This document shows positions 5,086 to 24,547 of a DNA stretch of 32,000 nt, piece after piece (the first letter of the stretch is position 1; each line of letters opens with the position of its first letter). The notes beneath the pieces were generated by a model. That model was given only the letters and a program-made list of their open reading frames with translations. It searched no databases and was not told the origin of the DNA. A program made the translations under genes and the position numbers. The stretch lies in contig NW_008806278.1 of NCBI RefSeq assembly GCF_000400465.1, positions 472,592-504,591 on the forward strand, in the 5' to 3' direction. The DNA is from Wallemia ichthyophaga EXF-994 (Eukaryota; Fungi; Basidiomycota).

Positions 5086-8000
5086 TTATATTTGTCTTTT
5101 TTTATAATATATCACTGGATCTATCAAACTGTCGTCGTCTGGGTTTTCATTCCTCTTGGGCTGCCATATAAACTGCTTGATTGTTCCAAGTGTCAGTGTA
5201 ACGTCTAATGGGACGTTATTGCATATCAGTTCCAATTCTCCTTCGACTGCTACATCTTTCGCAACGGACTTATCTTGTGGGAGTTTCTCTTTGACATAGT
5301 TCATTAATTTCCTCGTTCTCAAGAATCTGCTTGCATTCAGTCTGTTTCCGCTGTGACATATTAGTAGCTGCAACTTAGATACCAATACGAAACCAACCTC
5401 TCTGGTAAATCGCCTAACTCAGTCTCCCCTGGATGTCTCTCGAGCCAGAATGTAGCCTTGGGCGTACGCGGGTCTTTGTAAACATTGTTGCACAGTACCA
5501 TCTCCAGAACCCACTCAGGCAGTGTCTTTTCGAGGTGCTTTACATCATTACTATCTCCAGTAGTGCCAACTAACCCTCTGTATACACTCACAAACGCCTC
5601 AGTATCGTGACTTTCTTCGCTGACGACAATTGGTATATTATCGTGGAGTGTGATATCAGGTACGTCGCTCTTAGACGCAGGATTGAATCTTCCTTTTATA
5701 CTCTGCATAATAGTCACTTGACTTTGCGGTTGAGTGGTTTGTGGTGTGGGTGCTATCACTGGACTACTCTCCTCTTTCTTTACATTTGCAGCTTCCTTCT
5801 TCTCTTTCGAACGAGCATTCGATATCAGCATCCTGCCCATTAGACCACCTAGTCTACTACTTGACGGAGATGCCGAAAGCGTAGGTGAGCCGCCCTGCGA
5901 GCTGCTTTCTTGTGGTTTGAGACTACTCGAGCTACTAGAAGTCGAGACTTTCAATTTGCTGGGTGAATTACTGTGTGATACGGGCTGAGACTGCGATTGT
6001 GGTGCTCCCGGGTTGTTATCGTCCTCAGCATTAGAAAAGCTTTCGTTATCAGATACAGATGCAGATGCAAATGCAGGGGCAGGTGTTGGTGCTCCGGAAT
6101 GTCCAGGCGTCGGCATCAGTCCCAAAGTCGGCCTATTAAAGGTAACATCCCGAAACGCAGTACTTTCCCCATTTGGGTGTTGCTGCATAGTAGTATCAAG
6201 ACTAAAGTAGTCACTCTTCGTCTGACTTGTTGGAGTACGATCGCTTAGCGACGTACTAGGTGGTGGTTCGGCCAAAGCAGGTGGTGGTAGTGCAGGCGTC
6301 GCAGGTGGAGTTGCCAGCTGCCTCGATATACCAATCTGGGGTGTCTCGAGACCAGGTGTACCAAGCGTCGGCGTTCCGTATCCACCGCTAGCATTCTGGT
6401 TAACATAAGGCTTGTCTGAAGAAGCAACTTCAGTTCCTGAAGACTCTTCACCGATGTGCCTCTTCTCATACTCTATGAAATGGCGTAAAAGATTGGTGAG
6501 TACTAAATTTGCTAGATTTACTTGGGTTCTTGTCAGATTGAAAGCTGCAGTAGCGGCTACTGCACCCACCTCGTTTATCTTTGTTTTCGTCGTTTATTTT
6601 AACACCCTCAATACCAAGCTCATCGAGATATGCTTCACCGTCGAAACACCTGCTCTCGTCGAGATGGATTGTAAGTGAACCAGTCTGACAGTCAATGCTG
6701 TTCCAGGCGTTGGTTACAGCTTGGCCTTCGATCTTCTCTCTGACTTTCTCCAAAATGTCTTGACTAGTTAGCGTGCTACTACCATCGGTGGCCTCATCGA
6801 GAATAGAATCAATAACTTCATCGGTGTACTGACCAACGCATACACACCTAACTATATCCCATAGAGATACATGTCGGTGAGTGTTAATAGTGAGAACATG
6901 TCTGCGGTTGTTCAGCATTAGCGCTCTGATGATACCATGTCGACCTTTGATTATTGCCAGTGGTTCTACGTTAAGAGATGACCTAGATATTCTTGAACTG
7001 ATCGATGATGACGAGCTCTGCTTCAATGATGAGCTTTCTGGACGGCTAGTAGGTGGTGGTTGGATTGATAATTTCGGTGTGGCATCCTCATCTTGCTGCT
7101 GTTGATCAACATCACTCCAGATGCTCACATTGCTACTGCCTGCGCTAGCACTAAAAACAAAGTTGTTATCGCTCGCTATAAGCTTCGTAACACCATGTCT
7201 GGCCGTTGCGACCTCCTTGACGTCCTCGCCCACCATTTTAGTAATTCTACCACTTCTATCTCCGGAATAGAAAGTTTTGAGGTAAGGATCTTGCGAAAAT
7301 AGACTCCATACGCTGTCTCTGTGGTGACCAAATGTATTGATGCATGCCATTTGTCTAAGATCCCACAATTTGATATTAGAGTCTGAGCTTGCGGAAAGAG
7401 CTTTCGTAGAGTCTTCTGATAGAAGCAGCGAGCGCACATTGTCACTGTGTCCAGCCAAACTGTTAATCGGCTTAGAGGACCGTGGATCCCAGACATTGAC
7501 GACTCGTGAAGGTGTGCCTGTGAGCAGCAGTCCAGCTGAATGATTAGTAGCAATCGAATAGATTGACTGCTCAGTTGGTATAGAGATTACAGCATCGTTG
7601 CGATCCTCATTTAAATCCCATAATTTGGCACATCTATCTAATCCACCTGAGGCAATCCAAGAGCGATCGCGGCTATGTGAAGTGAGCGGAATAGTGATTG
7701 TAATACGTATTACTCACGCGTATGAAAGAACTCTAACGTAGTCGCCGTGGGTGCCAACCACAGCCGGCATGTGATTATCTTCCGCATGAGGTCTCCATGC
7801 CTTAACCGTCCTATCACTCGACGCGGAAACCAGAACCTGATTCTGCTTGGCGAGTATAATATCGTTGCAATGGTCTGTGTGCGTCTGTACACATTGTCTG
7901 AAAATTGGCTGATCTATCGGCTGAGCGTCGAGTTGATAGCTTTCCTCAAAGTGCTTAACAGGCTCATCATTTGTGCCGTACTTTACGCTCCTCTTTCTCG

Positions 8001-8322
8001 TCTGGAGTCCCAATTGCCAACTTGCGACAAGTCCGTCTTTGCCTGACGTATACAAGATACCCTCAGGGCTTGATTTTCCAGAAAGCTGAGTGGCCGTATC
8101 CAGTGCAAGCGTTGTGACGCCCAGTGAGTGCTTTGGGTGGTCCTCCTTGTCGAGCGCTGTGGTAGAAGACTCTATTCCATTATCAAGCGTATCGAGGTGG
8201 GTATATAGCGGGAACGTTCTGTTGATTCTTGCGTTGGCTTCAGGTACACCCAATAGGTATTTGCTGCTGTTTTCTTTCAGAACATACGTCAGTCGCTTCT
8301 GATTGCTGCTTGAACTCGGCAT
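5086..8322 (-). CDS. WDR48: WDR48/UAF1 (Bun107/Duf1-like) deubiquitinase cofactor: WD40 plus C-terminal DUF3337-type domain
   Basis: HSLGVTTLALD, THTDHCNDI, SASSDRTVKAW, THGDYVRVL, WIASGGLD, GHSDNVRS, SASSDSNIKLWDL and C-terminal RLNASRFLRTRKL...LTLGTIKQFIW. Introns 7673-7717, 6521-6569 and 5351-5397 restore the frame. Confidence 0.9.
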
Positions 8323-8420
8323 TCGCGGTGTGCCTTGACTGTATGAGAGGAGAGTGGAGAAGTTCGAAAAAATAAATAATTCTATCAATGGGCTATATAC
8401 ATCTCAGAATTCAAATCTTA

Positions 8421-11400
8421 TTATTTAGAACCGCCTTTTGATGTCCTCTTCTTGCTCTTCTTGTTAGTCTTCTCCGCTGCGTCATCACCCTTCCTCTTTT
8501 TCACGCTGACGTTGGTCTTGCCTTTGTTTACTTGCTCTTCTGCTTCTCTCCAGTCTTCTTCGTCCTGTGTCAGTGCGAACTTGTCCACATCAAGACTATC
8601 TATCGCATCTTTCTTTGCCGACTTGAAAGCCTCTTTGCCTGCTTCGTCGAGTTCCTCTTCAATGCCCTGGCTCATCTTGCTCCAGTCGCCCGTACCACCG
8701 TCTGCCTTCTTGGCGATCTGGGTTTGGGCTGTTGGGATTGTCTCTCCGATAGATTGCTTTTCAACATCTTGAAGACGTTTAGTAAGTCTTCTAATACTCT
8801 TCATGAAGAGAGCAAGCGCTTGTGATACTGGTACGTCTAACTCTGCCTAATGTTGGATATGTCAGCAAGCATTTCCTTTGAGATACCAACTCACCTCAAC
8901 GTCCTCAATCTGCTTTCTTTGTAAGCCGAGCGACAAGAGAATAGACGATTGTACAGCGCTCAGTTTTTCATCTCCGAATCTCTTCGTAAAGTAGAATTGA
9001 GTAATTTGTGGAAGCAAGTCAACAATGACGTGATAGTCCAGCATACTTGAGGCATAGCTTTCCAGTCTCTTCATATCGAATGGGGTCATAAAGTAGTGCA
9101 ACTCATTAGATGTGAGCGGCTCTCCGCCTTCGTCATCATTTGTACCAATCGATGTTGCCTCAAGGACAGTGAGAGCTGTGAGTGAGGGGAACTCTCTGAA
9201 CTTGTAGCTCAACAAGTTCAGAAATCTTCTTCTAAAGTCTTGTGCGAATGCTGACAACCAGCCACTTGTCTCGTCTGCATTACTGTTCAATCCTCTAATC
9301 ATTAGGCAGGAATGTTCACCAGTAAGCTCGTTCGCAGTTTGACGTATGTACAATGGAACATATCCTCTCTTCTTCCAGAATCTGAGGAGGTTTTCTGTCA
9401 TACCGTAAGACACACCCAGATAATCAAGCTTCTCAGGCTTTCTTTCACTGAGACGTTGAAGCAGTGGTGGCATAGAGGCAGCATCGCGAACCTTGATGTT
9501 GTCAGACATCAAGTCACCGCTATCTTCAGATCTGTCAAAGGTTTCTTCCATGTTGTCGTCACCTCCACCTTGGTAGATTTCACCTGAGAAGAAGGCATTG
9601 AGCTGCTCAAGAGCTCTGCTACCGTAGCCCATGTTGGCATAGTCTGGGTGACTGGCAACTCTGACGATACGAACACCAGACAATTGAGCAAAGTTCTCAT
9701 CTTGGAATTGCTGCGATATCAACCAAGGAATAAGATCTCCACCAGCTCTTTGACCTCTGCTGAGAGCATTCAAGATGCTTTCTTTGCTAATTTGACCTTC
9801 AAATGCCACTTGAAGAACAACTAGTGGTTCTGGAAGACTAGTTTCATCTCCTCTCAGTGGTGGTAGCAGCACAAAGAGAGCATGACCGGGAGCATCTGAC
9901 ATGAGCTGAAGATCGTTTGGAGAGTTCTTGTAGTGTGATGCAACATATAATCCCATCATACGCTGTAAGAATGCTTCAGAAGCTGGGTGGTAGCTGAAAA
10001 GAGTATCTCTATTGACGTAAAATAATTGACAGCTGTTTGGATGAGGTGTGCCTTTCAAGGCTGCTTTGCTAGTGACTGTAGCATCTAAGCAAAGTAATCC
10101 ATTGAGCCATTTTTCGATGTCATCTCCCGGTGAGTATCTGATTGGCTCCTCCAGTTTCAATTCTCTCAAAGTGCGTGCCTTTCCAGCAGTCGTAGCACCT
10201 TCTGGCTGGCCTTTCTTTTTGGTTGGACCGTCATTGGTTTCCTTGGAAATTGTTGGTCTAGTTTGCTCTCTCAACTGTTGGATGAGCTTAAGGGAAAGGG
10301 ATCTACCTGTACCTTCATAACCATTGATGGTGGACGACATGAATACGAGGTATGGACCTATGAGATTTCTGACCAATGGTAGTGGTATAGCAGCCGCTTC
10401 ATCAATAACCACTAGTTCAGCTTGACCGAGGACATGGGCGTCTTGTGGCTGAATGTATTGGATAGTTTGACGGTGATGCTTGAAGATGTTGACTCTAACA
10501 ATGGCCTTTTGGAAGTCTGGGTTGGCTGATTGTACGATATCGTAGTCTAAATGCTCCTCATATCCGAGACCGTCCAAACCCTTGAACAAGAATTCGAAAA
10601 GAGTACGTAAATTTTCAGGCGTAGGTGATGTGACGAATATGTTTGAGTAGCCGTGGGCCAAGGATGCTGCCATGGCTAAACCGAGTGCAGCAGATTTACC
10701 ACGACCACGAGCTGCAGTGAGGGTGACAGTTGAAGAGAGCGTCTTCTCAGCTATAGCTTCGACAAAAGTAAGCAATGATTTTGCCTAGGGAGTGTGAAGG
10801 TGGTTAGAGGGTGGTTAGAGGTTAATTGAAAGCCTACCTGATCGACTGTTTTAGTAGACTTGACTAATGATCCGACGATGTCAGTACCCTTCAGTTCCTC
10901 CTTAATAACATCAAGCTCGGCATTCTTTTTGGGTGGTTCTTGTACGGCTTTGATGTCTTTACCGCGAGATATTGGAAGTACGTTCAACTCATCATCCAAA
11001 ACGAGACAACTTGGATTTGCGCCGAGTGAGAGAATGAATCGTTCGTTGAAGCGACTAATTGGATTTTGCTGTGATTCAGTTCTGTACCTTTGGTGGACGT
11101 CCATCGACATGCTGTAGAGCTGCTTGAGAGAAGACATAGATTTGAGGAGGAGTACAACGGTACCACCGCCCTCAACGGTTTCAATAGTTCTTGCTAATAA
11201 GTTTGGAGTGATGCTCTCGAAATCCTGAAGAACGAGCATCCCAAAAGTCTGACCGAGGACCTTTGGAGTGTCCTTGTAGTAAGTGTAGCGTATATCTGTT
11301 ACAGACACAAACAACTCGAATGGATTCGCTTCATTTGGCTCTCTGATGCCTCTCTTGACATCCCTCTTGATCTTCTGCTCTCTCTTCTTCCTGTGGGAAG

Positions 11401-11648
11401 TGAACCCAAGATCATTCTTGTAGCACCATAGAACATTTGGCCTAGCGCTTGATCTGGCTTGTGAGAGGAAATAGTGCAAATTTACGATCTACGAGTACTC
11501 ATTGGCATCGTCTTCGCATCTAAGCAATATAACTCACTTGGTCTCTGCCACGATCACCAACCAATACGAAAAATGATCTATGGTTCCCTTTTACGCCATT
11601 CTCTATTAAACTTCTTACTCTTGAGTCCAGCTGCTTGACATTGGACAT
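8421..11648 (-). CDS. NAT10: RNA cytidine acetyltransferase (ac4C; helicase-ATPase plus GNAT)
   Basis: LDSRVRSLIENGV..HRSFFVLVGD, LWCYK, LQDFESITPNLLARTIETVEGGG, TAARGRGKSAALG, DEAAAIPLP, STINGYEGTGRSL and SHYKNSPNDLQ. Introns 11489-11537, 10785-10837 and 8847-8894. Confidence 0.97.
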
Positions 11649-12061
11649 GTTGGTGGTTGTGGTGATAGTTATTATAAGTTTCGCTATCGCCTCAATCTCA
11701 TTCAAATCTTTGAATTATCTTCCCAAGCACTCGTGAGGTTCTCCTGCCCCCCTTATGGACTTCTGTCTCAATCCGCGAATCCCCCACGGTTGTGTTTCGA
11801 TGGCTCGAGAGCTAGAAAGAACTTTAGATGTCTCTCTAGGATATTATTGAGTCCTAAAAGCCTCCGTCATTGCGGCGTAAAAGACGAGTGTAAGGTGAGA
11901 GAGCTGAAATGTAGTATTGAGACTTGAAAACCATCAAGCAGCTTAAGATTTACCGAAATCTATGCTGAAAGCTATATTATTGATGAATTTTAATTAGCTT
12001 GCAACAATACCAATTATATGTATTTAGTTCAAGACATGATACTAACTCATGTTAGTACAAT

Positions 12062-12169
12062 GGTGAGGTCGGATAGTGGTTATTCCGTTGATTTCAAGCA
12101 AAGAGCTTTCCAATTAGATTGGGACTGTCAATGCTTTATGCATCCTGGGTTCGAATCCCAGTCTCACCA
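12062..12169 (+). tRNA. tRNA-Leu(CAA), atypical, with 27-nt intron (12099-12125)
   Basis: Acceptor GGTGAGG/TCTCACC with discriminator A; D-arm GGAT-AGTGGTTA-TTCC and G26; anticodon stem TTGAT/GTCAA with loop TT-CAA-G[intron]T; variable arm TGC-TTTAT-GCA; T-arm CTGGG-TTCGAAT-CCCAG; oligo-T runs downstream. Confidence 0.75.
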
Positions 12170-12647
12170 TCCTTTTGCTTTTCTTTTGGCATCATCTATT
12201 TTTGATTTCTCCAACCCTGATCCATGACTGTTTAGGTAGATTTTATTCGACGGTGTAATTCGTTGATGGGGAGAAGTTGGTAAGGAAGAGCGTGAATATT
12301 TATATCTACACAACTTTAACGAAGAGAGTTAGAGATCATCCCGTTTTCTTTCTTACAAAGGGGTATTGCGATTATTTGATGGTAATTTAAAGCTTTTATC
12401 TTACCATAAATCACAAATTTGCTTCAAGATGCGCTTTTTACTGCTAAAGATTTGATGATTAAAGTGTCTTTGCCAAACCTCAATTAGGGGAGAGAAGGAT
12501 GTAAGTGCACTAAAGTGAGAAGCGAGTTGGGGTTGCGAGTATGATTGATATTTAAAACGGGTGATTGAATGGCAGCTGAGTGTGATTTTCAAGGGAGATG
12601 TCAACAGGAGTATCATGTGATTACAGCATAATATGCTTGCATCAACA

Positions 12648-12720
12648 GGGGATGTAGTCTAGTGGTTATGGCGCTTTCTTAGCATGGAAGAGGTCCCCGG
12701 TTCAATTCCGGGCATCTCCA
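12648..12720 (+). tRNA. tRNA-Ala(AGC)
   Basis: GGGGATG/CATCTCC-A acceptor, CTTTC-TTAGCAT-GGAAG anticodon arm, CCCGG-TTCAATT-CCGGG T-arm, T5 terminator at 12746-12750. Confidence 0.95.
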
Positions 12721-13040
12721 ATGACTCTGATCATTTCAGAGTATCTTTTTGCATATTTTAGCAATCCACACTTAATTTTATTCAACTCATCAATCATGCT
12801 TTAGTGTGCTTTAATATTTTGTGTTTTCATAATATTAACCAGTTTTGTTATTATTATCCCCTTATCTTCTCTCACATACAAATGTAAAATTCGGTGTGGA
12901 AGGGTTGTCGACTTGAAATGACACAATCTGTTCCAAAATCTACATTGTATCGTGCCCCACCGTCAACTTTTTCTTATGAGTTCTTTTTCGTATGCATTTT
13001 GCTGTATTATTAACACGTTGTGCATGTTGAATTCACAGTC

Positions 13041-13895
13041 TCACAAGTTTAAACACATCCTTAGTAATTTGAAATGAATATTAGTAACCATCTGCTTAAA
13101 ACGATTCAGTATTGAATAATGTTCAAATATCCTGCTTAACTTCAGCCCTGCTCGAGAAACCTTTGAAGCTTCTATCATCTTCGTTATAATTGCAAGGCCG
13201 GGGATAAGTAATGTCAGAAAACTAACATTCAATGCTCTCAAATTCAGACAGCTGATCGGCGTCAAAGACAACTTAAACGCGATTGATGGACGAGCTTTTC
13301 AGCCTTTGTAGCGTAAGATTGTTGCTTTCTTCCATGTGCGGTTATGGAGTGTTTACAAAGTAAAGCAAAAGAACCTGCATTATAAAGGAGCTGTTTGGGA
13401 TGTCTAGAAGGGAAGTTGGCCACAGCGGTATCTTCCAGCGAATTCAAGTGCAGTGTGAGCTTGTTGACTGTGTCACATGATGGCTAGTACTCCCAGAAAA
13501 ACGTTGACCTGCTTATTCAATCACATCGACGAGAGTGACCGCCAAATGGCGCAAATATCTCGGTTGAGGTAATATGATATTCCAAAGATGTCTAGTATAA
13601 GCTGCGGTGGTGTTTATTTCAATCTGCAGAAGGTTTATCTTTAACTCTATATCTCTTGTTCAGAGGAGGTGCATGTAGTGTGCAGCAGATGGGCTCCCAG
13701 GATACAGTCGTTGAACTTTATCAGGTAAAACGAGTCAAGATCTCCCAAATATCGCTTGGGTATGGCAAGGGATCTGTACAGCACGGAGATGGCGACTGAG
13801 TTGATATAACTTGATGTGAGCCTGAGTGCGCAGAATGTCTCCTGGGGGAGATAAATGAGTAACTTTACAATCAACTCGTATGGCAATATTTCCAT
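13041..13895 (-). pseudogene. F-box protein relic with frameshifts and stops
   Basis: N-terminus LPYELIVKLLIYLPQETFCALRLTSSYINSVAISVLYR is an F-box pattern. The downstream sequence breaks into several short frames with no convincing GT-AG/branch introns to join them. Confidence 0.55.
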
Positions 13896-14608
13896 AGCTG
13901 GTGGTCGTTTGTCATCAAGAGCATAGACCTTTCTGCTACTATTATATAAACGAGACTCGTCTTAAGGTTGTTGTGTTATGATATATATAGATAGAAGTCA
14001 AAACATATAGTCAAAAGCGTTACAACGATTAATAATTTTCGCCTATCTATACTTCTTGTGCATTGAAAGCTGGTGATTGTAGTGATTCAAACGGATGCGC
14101 TTCTTGGCACGTGTGCCGTAAATTAGGAGGTAAATACGTGGAGCTACCGGAGGCGCGCGGGTGGGTGCTGAGCTGGTTTTTGAAGAAGTCGTAGAGGGGC
14201 TTTGAGAGCTTCTTCATTTGAAAGCATATATTTCATCTCGAACCTTAACCCCAATCCATATATCCTCCTCCTCAACGATAATCTTGCTTGATCGAACTTC
14301 CTACATATGAAAATCCTGTGTGTGATACTGTCTACATTGCACTTACTGCAAAATGATGAGTCGGACAGTTTAAATCGGAATTGGTAAGACTTGGCAGTAT
14401 TTACGATATCCCTGAGAACACCCTGAAGCTGTCAATGTATACAATTGATCCAATCTCAGTCTAATGAAGGCCAAAATAAGCTCGAAGCATTTTTATTGAT
14501 AGATTTTAATATCTAAAACCGCCAGAAGCAGGCTCGGGCCAAAAACGCTACTTTATCGCACAAGCTAATGACGAGATATATTCTAACATGCGTTAAGAAA
14601 ATCATCAA

Positions 14609-14680
14609 TCCTTGTTAGTATATCGGTTAGTACGCCCGCTTGTCACGCGGGAGAGCTGGGTTCAACTCCCAGACAGGGAG
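14609..14680 (+). tRNA. tRNA-Asp(GTC)
   Basis: TCCTTGT/ACAGGGA-G acceptor, CCCGC-TTGTCAC-GCGGG anticodon arm, CTGGG-TTCAACT-CCCAG T-arm. Confidence 0.95.
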
Positions 14681-15302
14681 TTTAATTTTGTCAAAATGTT
14701 GACAATATTTTGCTCTTGCAATGAAATTAATGAAAAATTCACTCAATGCTAATGGACTTTTGAATGTTTTCAGAAATACCACGTCCGTCTTGACTGAAAC
14801 GAGACGCACACACAATTTACTCCAGCAAGGAATTCGAATCGTTTGGTTTTGAATGCGAGAAGGCACCACAGCACCAATCTGAGATATCGAGTTTTTCCGC
14901 AAATTGTTGCAACCGCTAGAGAAGACCTCCAGACGAACTGCGAGAAGACTTCACTCTTCCGTGCCAAGATGAAGAAAAGCAGCTTCAAGACGACAAGCGC
15001 ATGAGTATAAGCGATGCACGAAAAGAGAAGAAAAGAAAAGAAAGCTTGCTCTGATTGTGACACCTCATCCTTAAAATTTGCGTTTTATCCGACAACCCCG
15101 ATCGCTTGTATGGGGGGCGAGCAGATGAGGATGAATGAAGGGATAATTCACTACTTACGATGTGAGTAGAATAAGACACTATTTCATCTCGATCACGTTA
15201 TCATGTTATCTGCTGCACGGCCACACAAACAAGAATTGGTTTGTTCCTCGCATTGGCTGGCGAGCGGCGAAGCAAATTGCAAATTCTTCCACCCAAACAA
15301 TC

Positions 15303-15671
15303 ATGACCACTGCACAAATAGTCCTGCCCAATTTCTACAAATTCGTTCTCTGTACGGAAGCAGGACTGATAACCAACACAGAGCGCCTTCTTGCGCCAAG
15401 TTCGTTCGGCTCGTATCTCTCGTTCGAAATACTGAATACAAAAGACGGGAAATTCAAAATGCGCACAAGAGAAGTTGATGGAGGAGCCTTCGTCGGATAT
15501 TCAGATAGCGAGAGAATGTACCTTCATAAGAAACACGCTCAAGCAGACGAATTTGAAATCCATCTCAATACCATTGACAGTACGTTTCATCTCCTATCAA
15601 GCACCAACGGCAGAGTCAAATGCACTGGCAACGCCGTTTATCCTTCGCTCACCCCACCACTCAAGATATAA
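15303..15671 (+). CDS. Small hypothetical protein (122 aa), beta-strand rich
   Basis: ATG at 15303 inside ORF 15162-15671, coding-like composition, A-rich 3' flank. No family that I can recognise with confidence. Confidence 0.5.
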   Translation: MTTAQIVLPNFYKFVLCTEAGLITNTERLLAPSSFGSYLSFEILNTKDGKFKMRTREVDGGAFVGYSDSERMYLHKKHAQADEFEIHLNTIDSTFHLLSSTNGRVKCTGNAVYPSLTPPLKI

Positions 15672-15731
15672 TTATAACAGGAAATGCAACAACAAACAAA
15701 AACCATAGAAAGAACTATTTAGACAGCAATA

Positions 15732-18290
15732 TTAGGCATTCTCCCATCCTTGTACATTCACAACGCTCGTTTCTGAACCTTGTACGACATCACCAATGAC
15801 GTGTACATCATTTTCACCAGTCTTTTTGATTTCCTTGACAACGTTATCGGCATCTTGTGCATCGACTACCAATACCATTCCAATACCGTTGTTGAATGTG
15901 CGAGACATCTCACTCGAAGCGACACGACCGCTTTGTTGAAGCCAGTCAAAGATAGCTGGACGTTTCCATTTGCTAGCGTCCACGACAGCGCCAAGGCCTT
16001 TTGGTAGTACGCGAGGGATGTTGTCGGTGAAGCCTCCACCGGTAATGTGACTCATACCCTTGACTAATCCCTGTCTGATAACAGGGAGGGTTGACTTTAC
16101 GTAGATCTTAGTCGGGGTGAGGAGTTCTTCCGCTAAAGAGCCCTCGCGCTCGCTCCATGGAGCCTTTACGCAGCGGTAATCTACGTCGTTTCCATAAACA
16201 CGGGCAATGATCTTGTGGACGAGCGAATATCCATTTGAGTGTATACCCGATGAGGAGACACCAACGAGTACGTCACCAGCCTTGATATTGTTCTTTGGGA
16301 GTATTTCACCACGTTCGACAGCACCGACTGCAAATCCAGCGAGATCGTAGTCATCTATTGTGGGTAAGTAAGTGGCGTCGCGATTAGTACCCTGCTCACC
16401 GTCAGAGTAGATGTTCGGCATTTCAGCGGTTTCACCACCAATCAGAGCACAGTTTGCCTGCCTACACCCTTCTGCGATACCCTTGATGACAGCGGCTGCG
16501 TCATCGACTTGCAACTTGGAGCAGGCGTAGTAGTCGAGGAATAAGAGCGGTTCAGCACCTTGGACGATAAGGTCGTTGACTGACATAGCAACGAGGTCAA
16601 TTCCTTGTGTAGCATTAGTTGGTAACTCGAAAATACATCAACACCTACCAACACTATCATGGATCTTGGTATTATGGGCAATCTTAATCTTGGTGCCAAC
16701 ACCATCTGTTGCGCAAACTAATATAGGGTCTTTAAAACCGGCAGCTTTGAGGTCGAAAGCACCACCGAATCCACCGATATCAGCATCAGCTCCTGATCTC
16801 TTTGTAGCTTTGACGGTTGGTTTGATGAGATCTACGAGTCTGTTACCCTCTTCAATAGAGACACCAGCCTGAGCGTAAGTCATGCCCTCTTCGCTCGTAA
16901 CGTTGAGTGCTCTATGAGCAATATCTTTTCTATATGTCTTTCCTTCGAATTGAATAGCATCTACACCTTTGTAAGCTTTTTCGAGGGCTTCATGCAGCGT
17001 TGAGGCAAATGCAGATACAGCGAGAACTCTACCACCTGCGGTTACAAGTTGACCGTCTTTAATTGCAGTGCCGGCATGATACGCGACGACGTCTTGTGGA
17101 AGCTGATTAATTTTGATTGGCACGCCAGTAGGGTATTTGCCGGGATAACCACCGGAAGCGAGCACGACACTTACGGCATGCTCACCTTCTCTGAGGGAAA
17201 ACTTAACACAGTCGAGGCGGCGGTCAACACAAGCTTTCATAATCTCAGCGAGATCAGATTCTGGTGAGAGAAGACGCAAAAGTGCTTGTGTTTCTGGATC
17301 ACCGAATCTGACATTATACTCGAGTACTTTGACACCAGTTGGGTCGAGCATGAAACCAGTGAAGAGCATTCCGACCATTGGAAAACCATCTTTGCGCATG
17401 CCAGTGACGGTGTTTTGAATAATATTGAGGCATTCTTTGCGCACTTGAGGAGTTTCGGCAGGGGCAGGAGTGTATGCACCCATTCCGCCAGTATTTCCAC
17501 CAGTGTCACCTTCACCGATACGTTTGTGATCCTGTGCTGCAGGAAGGGCGTGTACGGTATAACCATCAGTGAAAGCAAGAACAGAGAGCTCTGGACCGGT
17601 GAGGAGTTGTTCGAGAACGAGAGAAGAGCCAGCAGATCCGAATTGATTCTTTTCAAGAACATTTTCAACCTCATTGATACATTCTTGTTCAGATTGAGGG
17701 ATAATAACGCCTTTACCACCAGCAAGACCGTCTGCCTTCACGACAAGGCTAATACCGTTTGAGTAAGACTGATGAACGTACTCCTTGGCTGGAGCGGATT
17801 GAGACTTGTCAAAATTCTTGAAAGCCGCAGTTGGAATGTTGTGTCTAGCCATGAAATCCTTTGAAAATGTCTTACTGCCTTCGCATTGGGCAGCTGCTTG
17901 TGAAGGACCGAAGACGCTGATACCAGCTGGGAGGGAATTAGATAGGCGTTGATAGGAAAAATACACCTGCCTTTCCTGAAATAACCCTCAACGCCGTCGA
18001 CTAAGGGCTGCTCAGGACCCGGTATGACCAGATTAATCTACGGATATAAATCAGATAAGGAATTTGAGGGTTTGAACACAACCCACATTATTCTCAATTG
18101 CAAATTTAACCAAATTATTGAAATCCTTGGGTGAATGTCCGCATTCAAAGTTTTTACATTTTGTGATATCCGCAGTGCCACCGTTACCTGGAGCAACGAC
18201 GATAGATTCTACTAGCTTTGACTGAGCAAGCGTGTACGCCAGTGTGTGCTCTCTTCCACCGTTACCGAGGATTAGGACTCTGAGTGACAT
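15732..18290 (-). CDS. ADE5,7: Bifunctional GAR synthetase/AIR synthetase (de novo purine synthesis)
   Basis: [76 protein letters not shown] and TFNNGIGMV. Introns 18038-18086, 17927-17970 (GC-AG), 16604-16648 and 16355-16399. Confidence 0.97.
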
Positions 18291-18321
18291 GGCGGTGTGA
18301 ATACAACAGCCATCATCCACT

Positions 18322-18845
18322 ATGATCAAAGTTGGTATCGGATGCTTTCTACTCAATCAACACAATCAGATTCTTATCGGTAAGAGGATCAATTCAATTG
18401 GCCATGGAACACTCGGTATATCCACACACACCGTCTATTTCTCATCTCACACACCCAACAGCACTCCCTGGTGGTCACCTCGAGTACGGCGAATCATTTG
18501 AGCAGGTTGTTCTTCCCCGTTCCTGTCTTTTTCCCGCTTACTCCCGATCAGTGTGCCGCGCGCGAAGTTGAGGAGGAAACTTCTCTTAAACCTTCTTCAA
18601 TTTCCCATTGGAAACTCGGAACCACCGTAGGAAGCCTCACCGAGTCAGAGCATTACGTCACCATCTTCATGATTGCAAAGCAAGCAACTGAAACACCTCT
18701 CGTGCCTTTAAACGCTGAACCAGAAAAATGCGAGGGTTGGTCCTGGATCGACTGGGAAGATCTCAAAACCCTACCACCAAGTAGACTATTCAAGCCGCTG
18801 AATGTGCTCATCGAGGAAAGAAGTTCATTTCGTCCGTGCATTTGA
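18322..18845 (+). CDS. Nudix hydrolase, NUDT15/plant NUDT1-like nucleoside triphosphate pyrophosphohydrolase (143 aa)
   Basis: Missed as a whole by the ORF track. Splicing out 18416-18461 and 18506-18551 gives [58 protein letters not shown]...HYVTIFM...NAEPEKCEGWSW, with a full Nudix box. Confidence 0.9.
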
Positions 18846-18874
18846 ATGGATTTAATGTATTGATATCCGCTTAT

Positions 18875-20044
18875 CTATATATCAGTTTTTATCACGCTAA
18901 TGAGCCTTTGCTCCCATTCTGCAAGTTCACCCTCCTTGTATTCGTCGGTCTTCTCTGCCAATGCCTTTTCAAACACACTCCAATCAATCACATTCTTACC
19001 AGTGGACAAACCACCATCTTCCATCGAAGCTTGAGGGAGTGCAAACTCCCCTTGTCGCGTTCTCGTCAGCTCAACGACGTGAGCTGATGATCCGAGTGCT
19101 TTACCGAGATCGTGAACAATCGATCTGACATATGTACCTCCTGATACTGTCATACGCAATTTGAAAGCTTTTGGTCCTTCTGTTGTTTCTGCACGTAGAG
19201 CGTTGTCTATCTTCTCTTCATCACTTTTGTCTTCATTCAGTTGGCTATTACTATCACTCTTTTCTACACTCTGATCGTCACTGTGGCTTACGAACTCTTG
19301 TGCTTTCTGTGCAGCCACCTTATCTTCATGGCTCAATTCATTTGTTGGGTATATGAAACTGTGTTTGTCTCCAGGGATAAAATCTTCAAGAGTGAGCGAA
19401 TGTATGGTGCATTTTCTGCTCTCAACTGGCTTTGGTGGTACTTCACCTGCTCTAGCATACTCGAACAACCTCTTTCCTTCAATTTTGATAGCCGAGAATC
19501 TTAAATCGACAGGCTAAGCAGAAGAATCGCGTGAGAGGATCACTCACATCGGCGGCAGCTGATCAATTTCACCTCTAAAGCCTTCCAGAGCTTTCTCAAT
19601 GTCGGCTTTTGTAATATGCTGCCACGGTGATTTAGATACGACGGCACCTTTAGAGTCGTACGAGTCTGTCTCGCATCCCAGCAATCCAATAGCAGTGTAT
19701 TCCTTAGAGCAATTCAACAGATCCGCTAGCTTCTTAGTACCCTTATTCAAACCAACGACAAGCACACCGTCAGCGAGTGGGTCAAGCGTACCACCCTGAC
19801 CAACTTTGACGGCGAATCCACCGATACCACGTCCACCGCCACCTTTACTCTTGCGCCACTTATTGCCCTTCTTTTTCTTGTCAGATGGCAGTGGCGGTGG
19901 AGCGTCTTCTGAAGGCTTGAACAGCTGCGAGTAACCAAAGAGCGGCTTGATAGAATCTAAAAGGGCCATAGAAGTTGGACCAGATGGTTTATTCACAGCA
20001 AATAACCCAGAAAGCGGGTAATGTATTGACTGCGTTTTCGGCAT
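18875..20044 (-). CDS. PUS4: tRNA pseudouridine-55 synthase (TruB family)
   Basis: GLFAVNKPSG, KVGQGGTLDPLADGVLVVG with catalytic Asp, GCETDSYD, PP|IFSAIKIEGKRLFEYAR (intron 19500-19547) and SGGTYVRSIVHDLG. Confidence 0.93.
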
Positions 20045-20071
20045 GAGCGTATAACTTAAACCTAAACAGCC

Positions 20072-22004
20072 ATGAGCAGAGATTTAAATAAAATTAAAGA
20101 TGAGGAACGCGAATCAAATCTCGGATCCGTTTATGGCGTTTCTGGTCCCGTCGTCATCGCACAAGGACTCGATGGCGTGGCTATGTACGAACTGATTAGA
20201 GTCGGTCATGACGAACTTATTGGTGAAGTTATTAGAATTGAAGGCAGATTGGCTATTGCTCAGATTTATGAGGAGACTTCCGGTTTGACAGTTGGTGATC
20301 CTGTCCTCCGCACTGGAAAGCCTTTATCTGTAGAGCTTGGCCCTGGATTAATGTCCAACATCTATGACGGTATTCAGAGACCTTTAAAGGGCATTAGGGA
20401 GAAATCTCAATCCATTTATATCCCACGTGGTATAAACACCGATGCTCTCGACCGCGGTGTTCAATGGGACTTCAATCCATCTGTCTCTGTCGGTGATCAC
20501 TTGTCTGGCGGTGATATTTACGGCAGTGTTTACGAAAACTCTCTGCTCAACGACCACAAGATGATGCTTGGTCCACGTTCACTCGGTACTGTCACTCATA
20601 TCGCTGAGAAGGGCGCATATAACGTCGACGACGTCGTCCTCGAAACTGAATTCGAGGGCAAGAAATCCAACCACACCATGGCACAACTCTGGCCAGTCAG
20701 AGCTCCACGTCCAGTCACCGAGAAACTCACTGCGAACAACCCCCTTCTCACCGGTCAACGTATTCTCGACTCTCTCTTCCCATGTGTTCAAGGTGGTACA
20801 ACTGCCATTCCCGGTGCTTTTGGTTGTGGCAAGACTGTCATTTCACAAGCTCTGTCCAAGTTCTCCAACTCAGACATCATCGTATACGTCGGTTGTGGTG
20901 AGCGCGGTAACGAGATGGCTGAAGTCCTGCTCGAATTCCCTGAACTCACTATCGAAGTCAACGGTCGTGAAGAGCCAATCATGAAACGTACTTCACTCGT
21001 CGCTAACACCTCCAACATGCCCGTCGCAGCTCGTGAAGCTTCCATTTACACGGGTATCACCATCTCTGAATACTTTAGAGATCAAGGTAAAAACGTTGCA
21101 ATGATGGCTGACTCTACTTCTCGCTGGGCTGAAGCGTTGCGTGAAATTTCAGGTAGATTAGCTGAAATGCCTGCTGACTCGTGAGTTGTCTTTATTGATG
21201 ATAATGGGGTTATATACTCACCACAATTCCAGCGGTTACCCTGCTTACCTCGGTGGTAAATTGGCTTCCTTCTATGAGAGAGCTGGTCGTGTCAGTACTC
21301 TTGGATCACCAAACAGAGAAGGGTCAGTTTCTATCGTCGGTGCTGTCTCTCCGCCAGGTGGTGATTTCTCTGATCCTGTTACATCATCTACCCTTGGTAT
21401 CGTACAAGTGTTCTGGGGTTTGGACAAGAAGCTCGCACAGAGAAAACATTTCCCCTCTGTTAACTGGAACGTATCCTACTCAAAATACACCAACGTTCTT
21501 GAACCATACTACGAAGATAATGCACCTGGTTTCATAGATTTACGTTCAAAAGCTAAATCTATCTTACAAAAGGAGGAGGATTTGGCAGAAATCGTTCAGT
21601 TGGTCGGTAAGAGTGCCTTGGGTGAGAATGACAAGGTTACACTTGAATTGGCTAGAATGTTGAAAGATGACTTTTTACAACAAAACGGTATGAGTGAATA
21701 CGATCGCTTCTGTCCTTTCTACAAAACAGCTGGTATGCTTGACAATTTTATTGCTTTCAATGAAGCCGCACAAAATGCAATCGTCGAAGGTGATCTTACT
21801 TATAACAATATCAAAGACGGTGTCTCCGATGTTATGTTTAAACTCTCTCAAATGAAATTTGAGTCACCATCTCAAGGTAAAGAGGATATTACCGGCAAGT
21901 TTGATCAACTTAATACCGTGAGTTGATGTATTTTTTAAAGATAAGCATTAGCTAACCACTAGTCACAGGAAATTCAAGAGAGATTTAGACAGTTGATCGA
22001 GTAA
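20072..22004 (+). CDS. VMA1: V-type H+-ATPase catalytic subunit A, no intein
   Basis: [15 protein letters not shown] (Walker A), [26 protein letters not shown] and [17 protein letters not shown]. Introns 21181-21231 and 21918-21968; stop TAA at 22002-22004. Confidence 0.98.
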
Positions 22005-22401
22005 ATTAGTCATGTTTTCTTTTTGTTATTAATCATTTTATCCATTGTAGAACTTTGTCTTTGATGTGTTTAAACTTGTGAGACTGTGAATTCAACATGC
22101 ACAACGTGTTAATAATACAGCAAAATGCATACGAAAAAGAACTCATAAGAAAAAGTTGACGGTGGGGCACGATACAATGTAGATTTTGGAACAGATTGTG
22201 TCATTTCAAGTCGACAACCCTTCCACACCGAATTTTACATTTGTATGTGAGAGAAGATAAGGGGATAATAATAACAAAACTGGTTAATATTATGAAAACA
22301 CAAAATATTAAAGCACACTAAAGCATGATTGATGAGTTGAATAAAATTAAGTGTGGATTGCTAAAATATGCAAAAAGATACTCTGAAATGATCAGAGTCA
22401 T

Positions 22402-22474
22402 TGGAGATGCCCGGAATTGAACCGGGGACCTCTTCCATGCTAAGAAAGCGCCATAACCACTAGACTACATCCCC
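22402..22474 (-). tRNA. tRNA-Ala(AGC), second copy
   Basis: Reverse complement of 12648-12720. Confidence 0.95.
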
Positions 22475-22952
22475 TGTTGATGCAAGCATATTATGCTGTA
22501 ATCACATGATACTCCTGTTGACATCTCCCTTGAAAATCACACTCAGCTGCCATTCAATCACCCGTTTTAAATATCAATCATACTCGCAACCCCAACTCGC
22601 TTCTCACTTTAGTGCACTTACATCCTTCTCTCCCCTAATTGAGGTTTGGCAAAGACACTTTAATCATCAAATCTTTAGCAGTAAAAAGCGCATCTTGAAG
22701 CAAATTTGTGATTTATGGTAAGATAAAAGCTTTAAATTACCATCAAATAATCGCAATACCCCTTTGTAAGAAAGAAAACGGGATGATCTCTAACTCTCTT
22801 CGTTAAAGTTGTGTAGATATAAATATTCACGCTCTTCCTTACCAACTTCTCCCCATCAACGAATTACACCGTCGAATAAAATCTACCTAAACAGTCATGG
22901 ATCAGGGTTGGAGAAATCAAAAATAGATGATGCCAAAAGAAAAGCAAAAGGA

Positions 22953-23060
22953 TGGTGAGACTGGGATTCGAACCCAGGATGCATAAAGCATTGACAGTCC
23001 CAATCTAATTGGAAAGCTCTTTGCTTGAAATCAACGGAATAACCACTATCCGACCTCACC
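22953..23060 (-). tRNA. tRNA-Leu(CAA) with intron, second copy
   Basis: Reverse complement of 12062-12169. Confidence 0.75.
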
Positions 23061-23605
23061 ATTGTACTAAGTTGAACATGACATTTCTGTGTCCTGTGTA
23101 ACAAATAAAGCTTACACTTTTTGATCGGAGATCTCCGGAGATATGGGGCGACGTCATAGGTTGGAGTCTGAAAGATTCATTATCTTCCGAATCAAGTTCG
23201 TGTCAGCATCTCCTAAAGTTTTCTTGCTGAAAGAGACGTCCGCCTGATGTTAAAGCTGAGGCGAGTTTAGAAAATAGATGCTAGTAGTTATCTCCTTGCG
23301 AGAAACATTCAGACCAATGGGATATTCTGAAACTTTTGCAAGAAATAAATTCCATTCTCGTATTCATTCATAGATAGCCGGTCCATCCTGCCGAGAAGGG
23401 CATTGTGCACATGACTGCGCTCGTGGAGCAAGACGAGAGGAGAATTGTTAGAGAAACAAGCCTTGATAGGCTAAAGTTACCTGCGCAATCTACACTCTCA
23501 CGTCATTGATATGACTCCGCAACAACCTTATCTATGATCTTCATTAGTGAACGACCAAGGGTATTTTACGAAGAAAGAAAAGAAACAACGCTGTTTATCA
23601 CAAGC

Positions 23606-24547
23606 ATGAACTCCCATAGCGAAATATTTGGATACCTAAGTGTCCTGAGCTGGTTATGCGCTCAGCTCCCACAAGTGTACAAAAACCACAAACTGAAGAC
23701 GATAGAAGGGCTGAGCGTGGAATTCATCATAACATGGCTCATAGGAGATCTTCTCAACCTCCTGGGATGTATATATACGAATCAGCTGCCATTCCAAGTC
23801 GCTTTATCATTATGGTTCATCTTGGTCGATTTGGCGCTCACTGGGCAATATCTCCAGTATCGCAATTACCAGGACGATAGAGGCAGGTCGACGACGAGGA
23901 TGATTACGCACAGGCAGACTGTCTCACTTTCCATTAACCGGGTGTCTGATCGCAGCGCGAGTGTGAAGCCGCCAGTAACGCTGAAACGATCACGGAGGTC
24001 ACAGACGCACTCAGTAAGAAGAGCGGAAAACAGCAGGAGTCGCACCTTTGCCAGTCTGGTCGCGCTCGGATTAACGGTAGGTGTCGGCGCTGCACCCACC
24101 CTTCCTCTCCCGTCTATCTCAGCAAAAGGTCTCGTTAGTGACGACCTCGCCATCATCATTGGCAAGCTGTCGTCGTGGGCTTGTGTAACGTTCTACTTGA
24201 GCAGCAGGATGCCGCAGATTTACTATAATTATCAACGTAAATCTGTTGAGGGTCTTTCTGTCTTCCTCTTCTTGTTCGCTTTGTTGGGAAACTCTTTTTA
24301 TACCATGTCGATACTGTCATCGCCACGATTTCAGCAGTCCCATCCTCAAGCCATGAAATATTTGCTTGAATCGTTACCGTGAGTAAACTTTTTGTCGTCA
24401 TTTTTAGTCTTATACGCAACTAATAGCTTCCTGATCGGATCAGTCGGTACCATCGTTTTTGATGTCATTATTCTTCTCCAAGTTCAAATGTACAAAGACA
24501 AGCCCCAGAACACAAGCGGGGAGCGGCAACCATTACTAGACAGTTGA
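23606..24547 (+). CDS. PQ-loop vacuolar cationic amino acid transporter (YPQ/PQLC2-like)
   Basis: Two PQ repeats (WLCAQLPQVYKN..EGLS and YLSSRMPQIYYN..EGLS). Intron 24379-24426 gives LP|FLIGSVGTIVFD and a C-terminal ERQPLL dileucine-like sorting motif. Confidence 0.9.

Follow-up and report, generated by a model that had tools for sequence, protein, structure and literature searches.

A perfect inverted repeat of 1008 bp, built of tRNA genes and spacer, brackets a 9-kb segment of housekeeping genes in Wallemia ichthyophaga EXF-994, a salt-loving basidiomycete (Wallemiomycetes). It lies in a 32,000-nucleotide stretch of the reference genome (contig NW_008806278.1, positions 472,592 to 504,591), referred to here as the window; coordinates given without a contig label are those of the window. 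The left arm of the repeat adjoins NAT10, and the right arm lies between VMA1, the last gene of the enclosed cassette, and a PQ-loop transporter gene. The most probable history of this structure, at a probability of about 0.7, begins with an ancient pair of tRNA-Leu genes bracketing the module from tRNA-Asp to VMA1. The roughly 110-bp repeat formed by this pair would have been enlarged to 1008 bp by a one-way copy in the W. ichthyophaga lineage. The evidence comes from the same locus in W. hederae and W. mellicola and from independent assemblies of W. ichthyophaga strains.

Geometry and content of the repeat

Positions 12052-13059 match the reverse complement of 22063-23070 over 1008 bp with 0 mismatches and 0 indels, as established by a base-by-base check and by blastn. 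So long a match is not a product of chance in 32 kb of sequence. The arms are 9003 bp apart, and a repeat finder outlines them slightly wider, at 12047-13059 and 22063-23075. Their features are as follows.

12052..13059, + strand: left arm, NAT10 side; tRNA-Leu then tRNA-Ala beside the NAT10 5′ end, as in W. hederae
12062..12169, + strand: intron-containing tRNA-Leu(CAA), left copy (Rfam RF00005, 40 bits)
12287..12370, + strand: 84-nt dispersed element in the tRNA-Leu/tRNA-Ala spacer, mirrored at 22752-22835
12648..12720, + strand: tRNA-Ala(AGC), left copy, probable ancestral position (ARAGORN and Rfam)
22063..23070, - strand: right arm, PQ-loop side
22063..22065: point at which the copied tract meets the ancestral VMA1 3′ flank; GAT common to the arm end and W. 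hederae (alignment)
22402..22474, - strand: tRNA-Ala(AGC), right copy, probable derived duplicate (ARAGORN and Rfam)
22953..23060, - strand: intron-containing tRNA-Leu(CAA), right copy (Rfam)

The initial annotation of this DNA, made from the letters alone, had reported the repeat with these borders and this tRNA content, and both are borne out by the base-by-base check, blastn, ARAGORN and Rfam. The CAA anticodon of tRNA-Leu was read from the sequence. The four tRNA genes of the arms are all oriented inward, toward the cassette, and Rfam and Pfam scans found no arm genes other than tRNA. The repeat edge lies 10 bp upstream of tRNA-Leu, with 890 bp of repeat downstream of it.

Origin of the second copy

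The W. hederae locus is contained in one 239-kb contig (loci L028 and L029) and lacks the 1-kb repeat. Its gene order runs MTR4, KRE6/CAX, PQ-loop, tRNA-Leu, VMA1, PUS4, Nudix, ADE5,7, orphan, tRNA-Asp and the F-box region. This is followed by tRNA-Ala, peptidase M19, two successive AKR genes, MIOX, BUB3, PIG-S and WDR48-NAT10, and finally by tRNA-Leu, 67 bp and a second tRNA-Ala. Relative to PQ-loop/CAX/KRE6/MTR4, the cassette points the same way in W. hederae as in W. ichthyophaga.

The two ends of the W. hederae cassette correspond to the two arms in very different ways. On the F-box side an orthologue of tRNA-Ala is present (L028 2331-2403) and its distance to the conserved F-box region is 484 bp, compared with 471 bp in W. 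ichthyophaga. The succession NAT10, tRNA-Leu, tRNA-Ala is likewise shared by W. hederae and the left arm of the window. On the VMA1 side the gene end is separated from tRNA-Leu by 151 bp, and Rfam finds no tRNA-Ala in this interval. A tRNA-Leu convergent with VMA1 is found in all three Wallemia species. The W. hederae VMA1 3′ flank aligns with the window through position 22065, then diverges, and homology returns at 22944 with tRNA-Leu.

The alignments place an insertion junction at 22063-22065 and indicate that copying went from left to right. Since W. hederae homology stops at the inner border of the right arm, the inner part of that arm (about 880 bp) is read as an insertion in the W. ichthyophaga lineage. 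The direction of copying follows from W. hederae having tRNA-Ala on the F-box side and none on the VMA1 side. By this comparison the outer tRNA-Leu of the right arm would be ancestral, and the inner approximately 880 bp (22066-22943) a derived copy of the left arm, which itself appears to be the ancestral source copy. The GAT at 22063-22065 is a possible 3-bp microhomology.

A break-and-copy mechanism would account for this pattern. A break would fall between VMA1 and the PQ-side tRNA-Leu, and the broken tRNA-Leu end would invade the inverted tRNA-Leu on the NAT10 side, using it as a primer site. Synthesis of about 890 bp would then copy the 478-bp spacer, tRNA-Ala(AGC) and 339 bp past tRNA-Ala. 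The new strand would be rejoined 59 bp past the VMA1 stop, either without homology or on the 3-bp microhomology, so that the copied tract would replace a spacer that measures about 80 bp in W. hederae.

Inversion by staggered breaks offers another route to inverted duplicates. In the model developed for Drosophila, staggered-break inversions put such duplicates at both ends of the inverted segment. The W. ichthyophaga arms resemble this outcome in that they are identical and sit exactly at the segment ends, and tRNA genes are known rearrangement hotspots (PMC7990762). A very recent inversion with breakpoint duplication had been proposed in the initial annotation, and the W. hederae locus contradicts it. 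The model predicts a segment that is inverted relative to a relative without the duplication, whereas the W. hederae cassette lies the same way round relative to PQ-loop/CAX/KRE6/MTR4. W. hederae also already has tRNA-Ala on the F-box side and tRNA-Leu on the VMA1 side, and the inner border of the right arm has the form of an insertion junction, not of an inversion junction. A staggered break at one end would have to start from a single, uninterrupted copy of the 1008 bp and would invert the cassette, while staggered breaks at both ends would be expected to leave interleaved repeats in place of one contiguous arm. A recent staggered-break inversion is thus a very improbable origin for the arms.

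The Logan contig of one further Wallemia relative (L016, SRR25399871), which is approximately 78-80% identical at the nucleotide level to W. ichthyophaga and to W. hederae alike, is uninformative, as no tRNA and 1.5 kb of unrelated sequence are found upstream of its PQ-loop gene.

Age of the tRNA-Leu bracket

W. mellicola VMA1 is found on 24 contigs, and the gene order was taken from 10 of them. All 10 carry tRNA-Leu (+), about 2 kb, a tRNA-Asp-like stretch, orphan, ADE5,7, Nudix, PUS4 and VMA1, followed by about 950 bp, tRNA-Leu (-), a DUF6736 gene and NAT10. The W. mellicola tRNA-Leu pair forms a 119-nt inverted repeat with 94% identity. Neither Rfam nor a blastn search of the W. mellicola loci with the tRNA-Ala of the window finds a tRNA-Ala between VMA1 and tRNA-Leu. 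The left tRNA-Leu(CAA) of the window aligns with the W. mellicola and W. hederae copies. Because the inward-facing tRNA-Leu bracket is present in both W. mellicola and W. ichthyophaga, it predates their split and is ancient.

The position of NAT10 distinguishes the two species. It lies on the VMA1 side in W. mellicola and on the opposite side in W. ichthyophaga. The W. mellicola module is thus inverted relative to NAT10, with tRNA-Leu at both of its ends. The module contigs of W. mellicola end about 450 bp past the far tRNA-Leu. The contigs carrying PQ-loop/CAX/KRE6/MTR4 end 5.5-7 kb past PQ-loop, in polymorphic repeat-rich DNA. When the PQ-side sequences (the reference scaffold and 3 strain contigs) are compared with the module contigs, only short repeats of 70-83% identity are found in common.

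The W. mellicola sequences hold several further features. Beyond PQ-loop (L017 12600-18183; L021-L023 past 14800) the strains are 91-97% identical to each other and differ by presence/absence blocks. The 5.5-7 kb beyond PQ-loop contain an internal palindrome-like repeat of approximately 350 bp, and every assembly stops there. W. mellicola alone has the DUF6736-family gene (L005 13321-14262; about 250-280 aa) between tRNA-Leu and NAT10. The gene is flanked by direct repeats of 97-121 nt that are 71-84% identical and about 1.97 kb apart, which suggests an insertion in the W. mellicola lineage. The F-box relic of the window was considered as an orthologue of this gene and rejected, as the two have no similarity. 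The W. mellicola counterpart of tRNA-Asp (L005 2683-2787) is 74% identical, has about 25 extra bases and is missed by ARAGORN and Rfam; this tRNA gene may be disrupted or intron-bearing.

Assembly evidence for the repeat

The EXF-994 reference was built with SOAPdenovo (K=21) from 500-bp and 2-kb Illumina libraries. The possibility that one tRNA repeat contig was placed twice, or that the cassette was mis-scaffolded, has to be considered in such a short-read reference, where a collapsed repeat would yield perfect identity. The orientation of the cassette in the reference is set solely by the 2-kb mate pairs.

Independent assemblies of other strains end at the arm borders in a characteristic way. 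Among the Logan contigs (k=31), L001 and L004 stop at 22092, which is 30 nt inside the inner border, and L024 and L018 stop 37 nt inside the outer borders, at 12088 and 23034. The outer edge of arm identity shifts by a few bases among strains (37 versus 30 nt in L024 and L018). In L024 (SRR25393947) a single-nucleotide polymorphism (SNP) at 12058, 4 nt upstream of the left tRNA-Leu, moves the start of identity by 7 nt. The population genomes of W. ichthyophaga were assembled with a maximum k of 120 (PMC6738226). The NCBI contig L015, reported for 6 samples, stops 119 nt inside the outer border, and VMA1 of other W. ichthyophaga strains lies on contigs of 9242 and 9253 bp, to be compared with 9003 + 2x119. 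Independent assemblies thus break k-1 bases inside the arm borders for two values of k, and therefore the inverted repeat is real and present in many strains.

The same contigs bear on an assembly artefact. Three of the four junction types occur in independent reads, namely NAT10/arm (L024), arm/VMA1 side (L001, L002 and L004) and arm/PQ-loop (L015 and L018), and the fourth follows from the cassette contigs of 9242 and 9253 bp. Assemblies would not split at both borders of a single-copy region, and the contigs end k-1 bases inside the borders for two k values. A doubly placed contig or a mis-scaffolded cassette is therefore highly unlikely. Two scans of JGI metagenome contigs, one with the arm sequence and one with the W. 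mellicola contig end, gave no match.

Points against a one-way copy

Several points, taken from each of these comparisons, weigh against the history proposed above. The inner 339 bp of the left arm are non-coding and too diverged for orthology with W. hederae to be shown directly, and only the spacing and the flanking anchors match. The VMA1 stop and tRNA-Leu are 949 bp apart in W. ichthyophaga and 954 bp apart in W. mellicola, a likeness that could reflect an old long spacer followed by a deletion in W. hederae. One environmental Logan contig, L002 (SRR25393958), continues across the inner border up to tRNA-Ala (window 22063-22431) and differs from the arm by 3 SNPs in 369 bp (22070, 22155 and 22354). 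Arm extent or identity may thus differ in some strains, and low coverage is an alternative cause of the crossing. The absence of mismatches between the reference arms could be due in part to one collapsed repeat contig placed twice. Finally, a single simple inversion apparently fits the W. mellicola order, but the far-side join of the PQ-loop block is unproven.

The likeness of the 949- and 954-bp spacers is judged a coincidence for two reasons. The W. mellicola interval lacks a tRNA-Ala, and a deletion in W. hederae would need to have stopped within 3 bp of the arm border purely by accident. A sensitive search of the W. ichthyophaga spacers against those of W. mellicola gives chance-level matches only. 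Extension of the old tRNA-Leu bracket by a one-way copy is retained as the preferred history.

Possible homogenisation of the arms

The introns of tRNA-Leu are species-specific between species and alike within each genome. The two copies are identical in W. ichthyophaga and match at 108 of 109 positions in W. hederae, and the W. mellicola copies share species-specific changes that include compensating changes in stems. The arms vary in sequence from strain to strain, as L002 shows. Had they drifted independently since the separation of strains that are 0.25-0.94% apart, 2.5-9.5 differences should have accumulated over the 1008 bp. The probability of none under such drift ranges from 0.08 down to 8e-5, where the identity of the arms within the genome is that of one short-read-based assembly and L002 crosses a border. 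The comparison would favour arms that are identical through a very recent event or through continuing gene conversion.

Two tRNA-bounded inversions in Wallemia

A second inversion at this locus is bounded by a different tRNA pair. In W. hederae a 16-kb block from peptidase M19 to NAT10, together with tRNA-Leu, lies between inverted tRNA-Ala(AGC) genes and is reversed relative to W. ichthyophaga. The W. hederae tRNA-Ala repeat is 117 nt long with 94% identity (L029 4728-4844 and 20797-20913) and is centred on two identical tRNA-Ala(AGC) genes. Recombination between them would turn one gene order exactly into the other. A single inversion separates the W. ichthyophaga order from that of W. hederae (through tRNA-Ala) and apparently also from that of W. 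mellicola (through tRNA-Leu), and it takes two steps to get from W. hederae to W. mellicola. The most economical ancestor, being one step from each of the other species, is an order like that of W. ichthyophaga but lacking the long repeat. The junction between NAT10 and the cassette is used in both inversions.

Each inversion is therefore bounded by opposite tRNA genes of the same kind, tRNA-Leu(CAA) in one case and tRNA-Ala(AGC) in the other. The orientation of the W. mellicola module relative to NAT10 is a difference between related species with its breakpoints in repeats. Recombination between the repeats is the presumed cause of both inversions.

Possible present-day inversion of the cassette

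Host homologous recombination could readily act on a perfect repeat of 1 kb, and the 9-kb cassette would thereby be inverted. Such a crossover would leave every gene intact, as the initial annotation had correctly noted. Flipping should have little or no effect on gene expression, to judge from the layout, because the same 1 kb of identical sequence lies beside NAT10, PQ-loop, VMA1 and the F-box region in either orientation. The structure is an ordinary recombination-prone one and not a genetic switch. Any flipping in present-day W. ichthyophaga is putative, and short reads cannot separate the two orientations of the cassette.

A rival reading is a recurrently flipping cassette, with both orientations coexisting among W. 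ichthyophaga strains or within one culture, as in the flip/flop region of S. cerevisiae chromosome XIV or the inverted-repeat isomers of plastids. The arms are 1008 bp long and perfectly identical, there are signs of concerted evolution, and the same module was inverted in the W. mellicola lineage with arms of only about 110 bp. There is also a close documented parallel in which the repeat contains a tRNA gene (PMC9731477). Against recurrent flipping, all W. ichthyophaga assemblies except the window either break at the arms or were reference-guided, and the species is rare, with only 21 strains studied (PMC6738226). In the parallel case from Saccharomyces cerevisiae the orientation is reported to be stable on laboratory timescales (PMC9731477). 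Coexistence of both orientations is on balance unlikely. The idea of a gene-converted, recurrently flipping tRNA-bounded module, which the initial annotation had put forward, holds in its general sense of a locus prone to conversion and inversion, and the evidence for inversion itself is between species only, from W. mellicola.

A wider version of the same idea can be stated. W. ichthyophaga has long been regarded as clonal and asexual. The 9-kb segment might flip in mitosis with both forms coexisting and the arms being kept identical thereby, as one state of a nested tRNA-Leu/tRNA-Ala system that rearranges this Wallemia locus. This is still more doubtful than coexistence of the two orientations taken by itself. 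If true, the mitotic flip-flop would be a nuclear counterpart of the inverted-repeat flip-flop of plastids, with a birth by repeat extension that can be mapped to a few bases.

Cassette and flanking genes

The enclosed cassette and the genes next to it are listed below.

13060..22062: enclosed cassette, 9003 bp
13647-13895, - strand: F-box-like open reading frame (ORF) (Pfam)
14609-14680, + strand: tRNA-Asp(GTC) (tRNA scans)
15162-15671, + strand: orphan ORF
about 15732-18320, - strand: ADE5,7 (GARS/AIRS) (Pfam)
18471-18845, + strand: Nudix (Pfam)
18875-20044, - strand: PUS4/TruB (Pfam)
20072-22004, + strand: VMA1 (V-ATPase subunit A) (Pfam and splicing model)
8421..11649, - strand: NAT10/KRE33, left flank (Pfam; start placed by alignment to W. 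mellicola and W. hederae)
23534..24382, + strand: PQ-loop transporter gene, first large exon, right flank (Pfam)

Pfam and the tRNA scans confirm the genes that had been named for the cassette in the initial annotation. The stop codon of VMA1 lies at about 22004, which is 59 bp short of the right arm, and the 5′ end of NAT10 is about 400 bp from the left arm. Beyond PQ-loop the right flank carries CAX, KRE6 and MTR4 (Pfam). The spliced VMA1 model and EOR02111.1 of W. ichthyophaga EXF-994 agree in full, VMA1 is 95% identical to the W. mellicola protein, and the PQ-loop ORF matches W. ichthyophaga E3P81_03725 at 100% identity. Split ORFs were considered as frameshifts or pseudogenes; this was rejected, as introns of approximately 50 bp, bounded by canonical GT..AG, separate them, and splicing of VMA1 recovers the deposited protein. 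Exact-product look-ups of the BUB3-like ORF and the F-box ORF gave no match.

Among the 19 scanned ORFs of the cassette and flanks, Pfam finds no recombinase, integrase or transposase domain and no homeodomain, HMG, pheromone or receptor gene. This agrees with the earlier statement that the cassette holds neither a recombinase nor a mating gene.

The region beside the F-box relic (13191-13483) is 73-74% conserved with W. hederae, near the level of coding sequence, and no gene is annotated at its W. hederae counterpart. The F-box gene may be a functional multi-exon gene and not a relic. In window 5361-11649 the annotations of the population genomes merge NAT10 with the WDR48-like gene into a product of 1997-2091 aa. 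EXF-994 has two genes here (EOR02105 and EOR02106), and the fusion is probably an annotation artefact.

The 84-nt element of the arms has a third copy at 153-236, some 12 kb away near an aldo-keto reductase gene, with 80% identity. It has sharp edges, and the third copy could fold as a 13-bp hairpin; the element belongs to no Rfam family and has no significant fold. The tRNA-Leu/tRNA-Ala spacer that holds it is 478 bp long in W. ichthyophaga compared with 67 bp in W. hederae. The element may be the remnant of a dispersed or mobile element that was inserted upstream of tRNA-Ala.

Significance

The history proposed here would mean that a short inverted pair of tRNA genes can become a kilobase-long perfect repeat through a single templated copy. 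As the repeat grew, a weak hotspot of recombination would have become a strong one. The states before and after this event are found among the three Wallemia species, with the insertion junction resolved within 3 bp. A practical consequence is that short-read Wallemia assemblies are interrupted at the arms. Physiological importance is unlikely, as no gene is disrupted and no regulatory surroundings are altered, and in functional terms the structure adds just one copy of tRNA-Ala(AGC).

Comparison with known systems

Mating-type switching in Ogataea polymorpha and Komagataella phaffii uses inverted repeats of roughly kilobase scale around an invertible segment. The W. ichthyophaga cassette has the same layout, with inverted repeats around a candidate invertible segment that host recombination would flip. 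In contrast to the yeast systems it holds neither MAT genes nor a context of position-dependent silencing. The analogy with mating-type switching that had been drawn for this DNA fails, as the arms are identical and intergenic and the surroundings of each gene are unchanged by a flip. The putative mating locus of Wallemia comprises SXI1, STE3 and an HMG-motif gene and is inverted in some strains (PMC6738226); none of these three genes is present in the window. Recombinase-driven invertible elements, such as bacterial invertons and the FLP/FRT system of the 2-micron plasmid, differ from the Wallemia structure in that no recombinase is found among the 19 scanned ORFs of the cassette and flanks.

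The closest parallel is a 24-kb flip/flop region on chromosome XIV of S. cerevisiae. Its 4-kb arms contain a tRNA gene and undergo continual homogenisation, and the region has switched orientation many times (Salzberg et al. 2022, PMC9731477). In both fungi a housekeeping segment lies between near-identical inverted repeats without a dedicated recombinase and its orientation differs between lineages. In both the repeats hold a tRNA gene, and those of Wallemia may likewise be homogenised. The W. ichthyophaga repeats surround a unique segment in the same manner, with borders confirmed in independent assemblies. The two systems differ in that the S. cerevisiae arms are 4 kb long and carry sporulation genes, while those of Wallemia are 1 kb and consist only of two tRNA genes and spacer. 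Both orientations occur within yeast species, as seen by long reads and PCR, whereas the Wallemia difference is between species only. For Wallemia the birth of the long repeat is assigned to one lineage and mapped to a few bp.

The inversions between the Wallemia species recall a pattern seen in Saccharomyces, where all inversions found between species were flanked by oppositely oriented tRNA genes (Kellis et al. 2003, as summarised in PMC7990762). The Wallemia inversions likewise end at opposite tRNA genes, which are tRNA-Leu(CAA) in the case of the 9-11 kb module and tRNA-Ala(AGC) in that of the 16-kb block. The Saccharomyces cases are from ascomycete yeasts and the present ones from a basidiomycete of the Wallemiomycetes. 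The pattern is thereby extended to a basidiomycete lineage that diverged early and has a very small genome. The Wallemia locus differs further in having two adjacent inversions with one common junction and in the enlargement of one of the two brackets into a perfect repeat of 1 kb.

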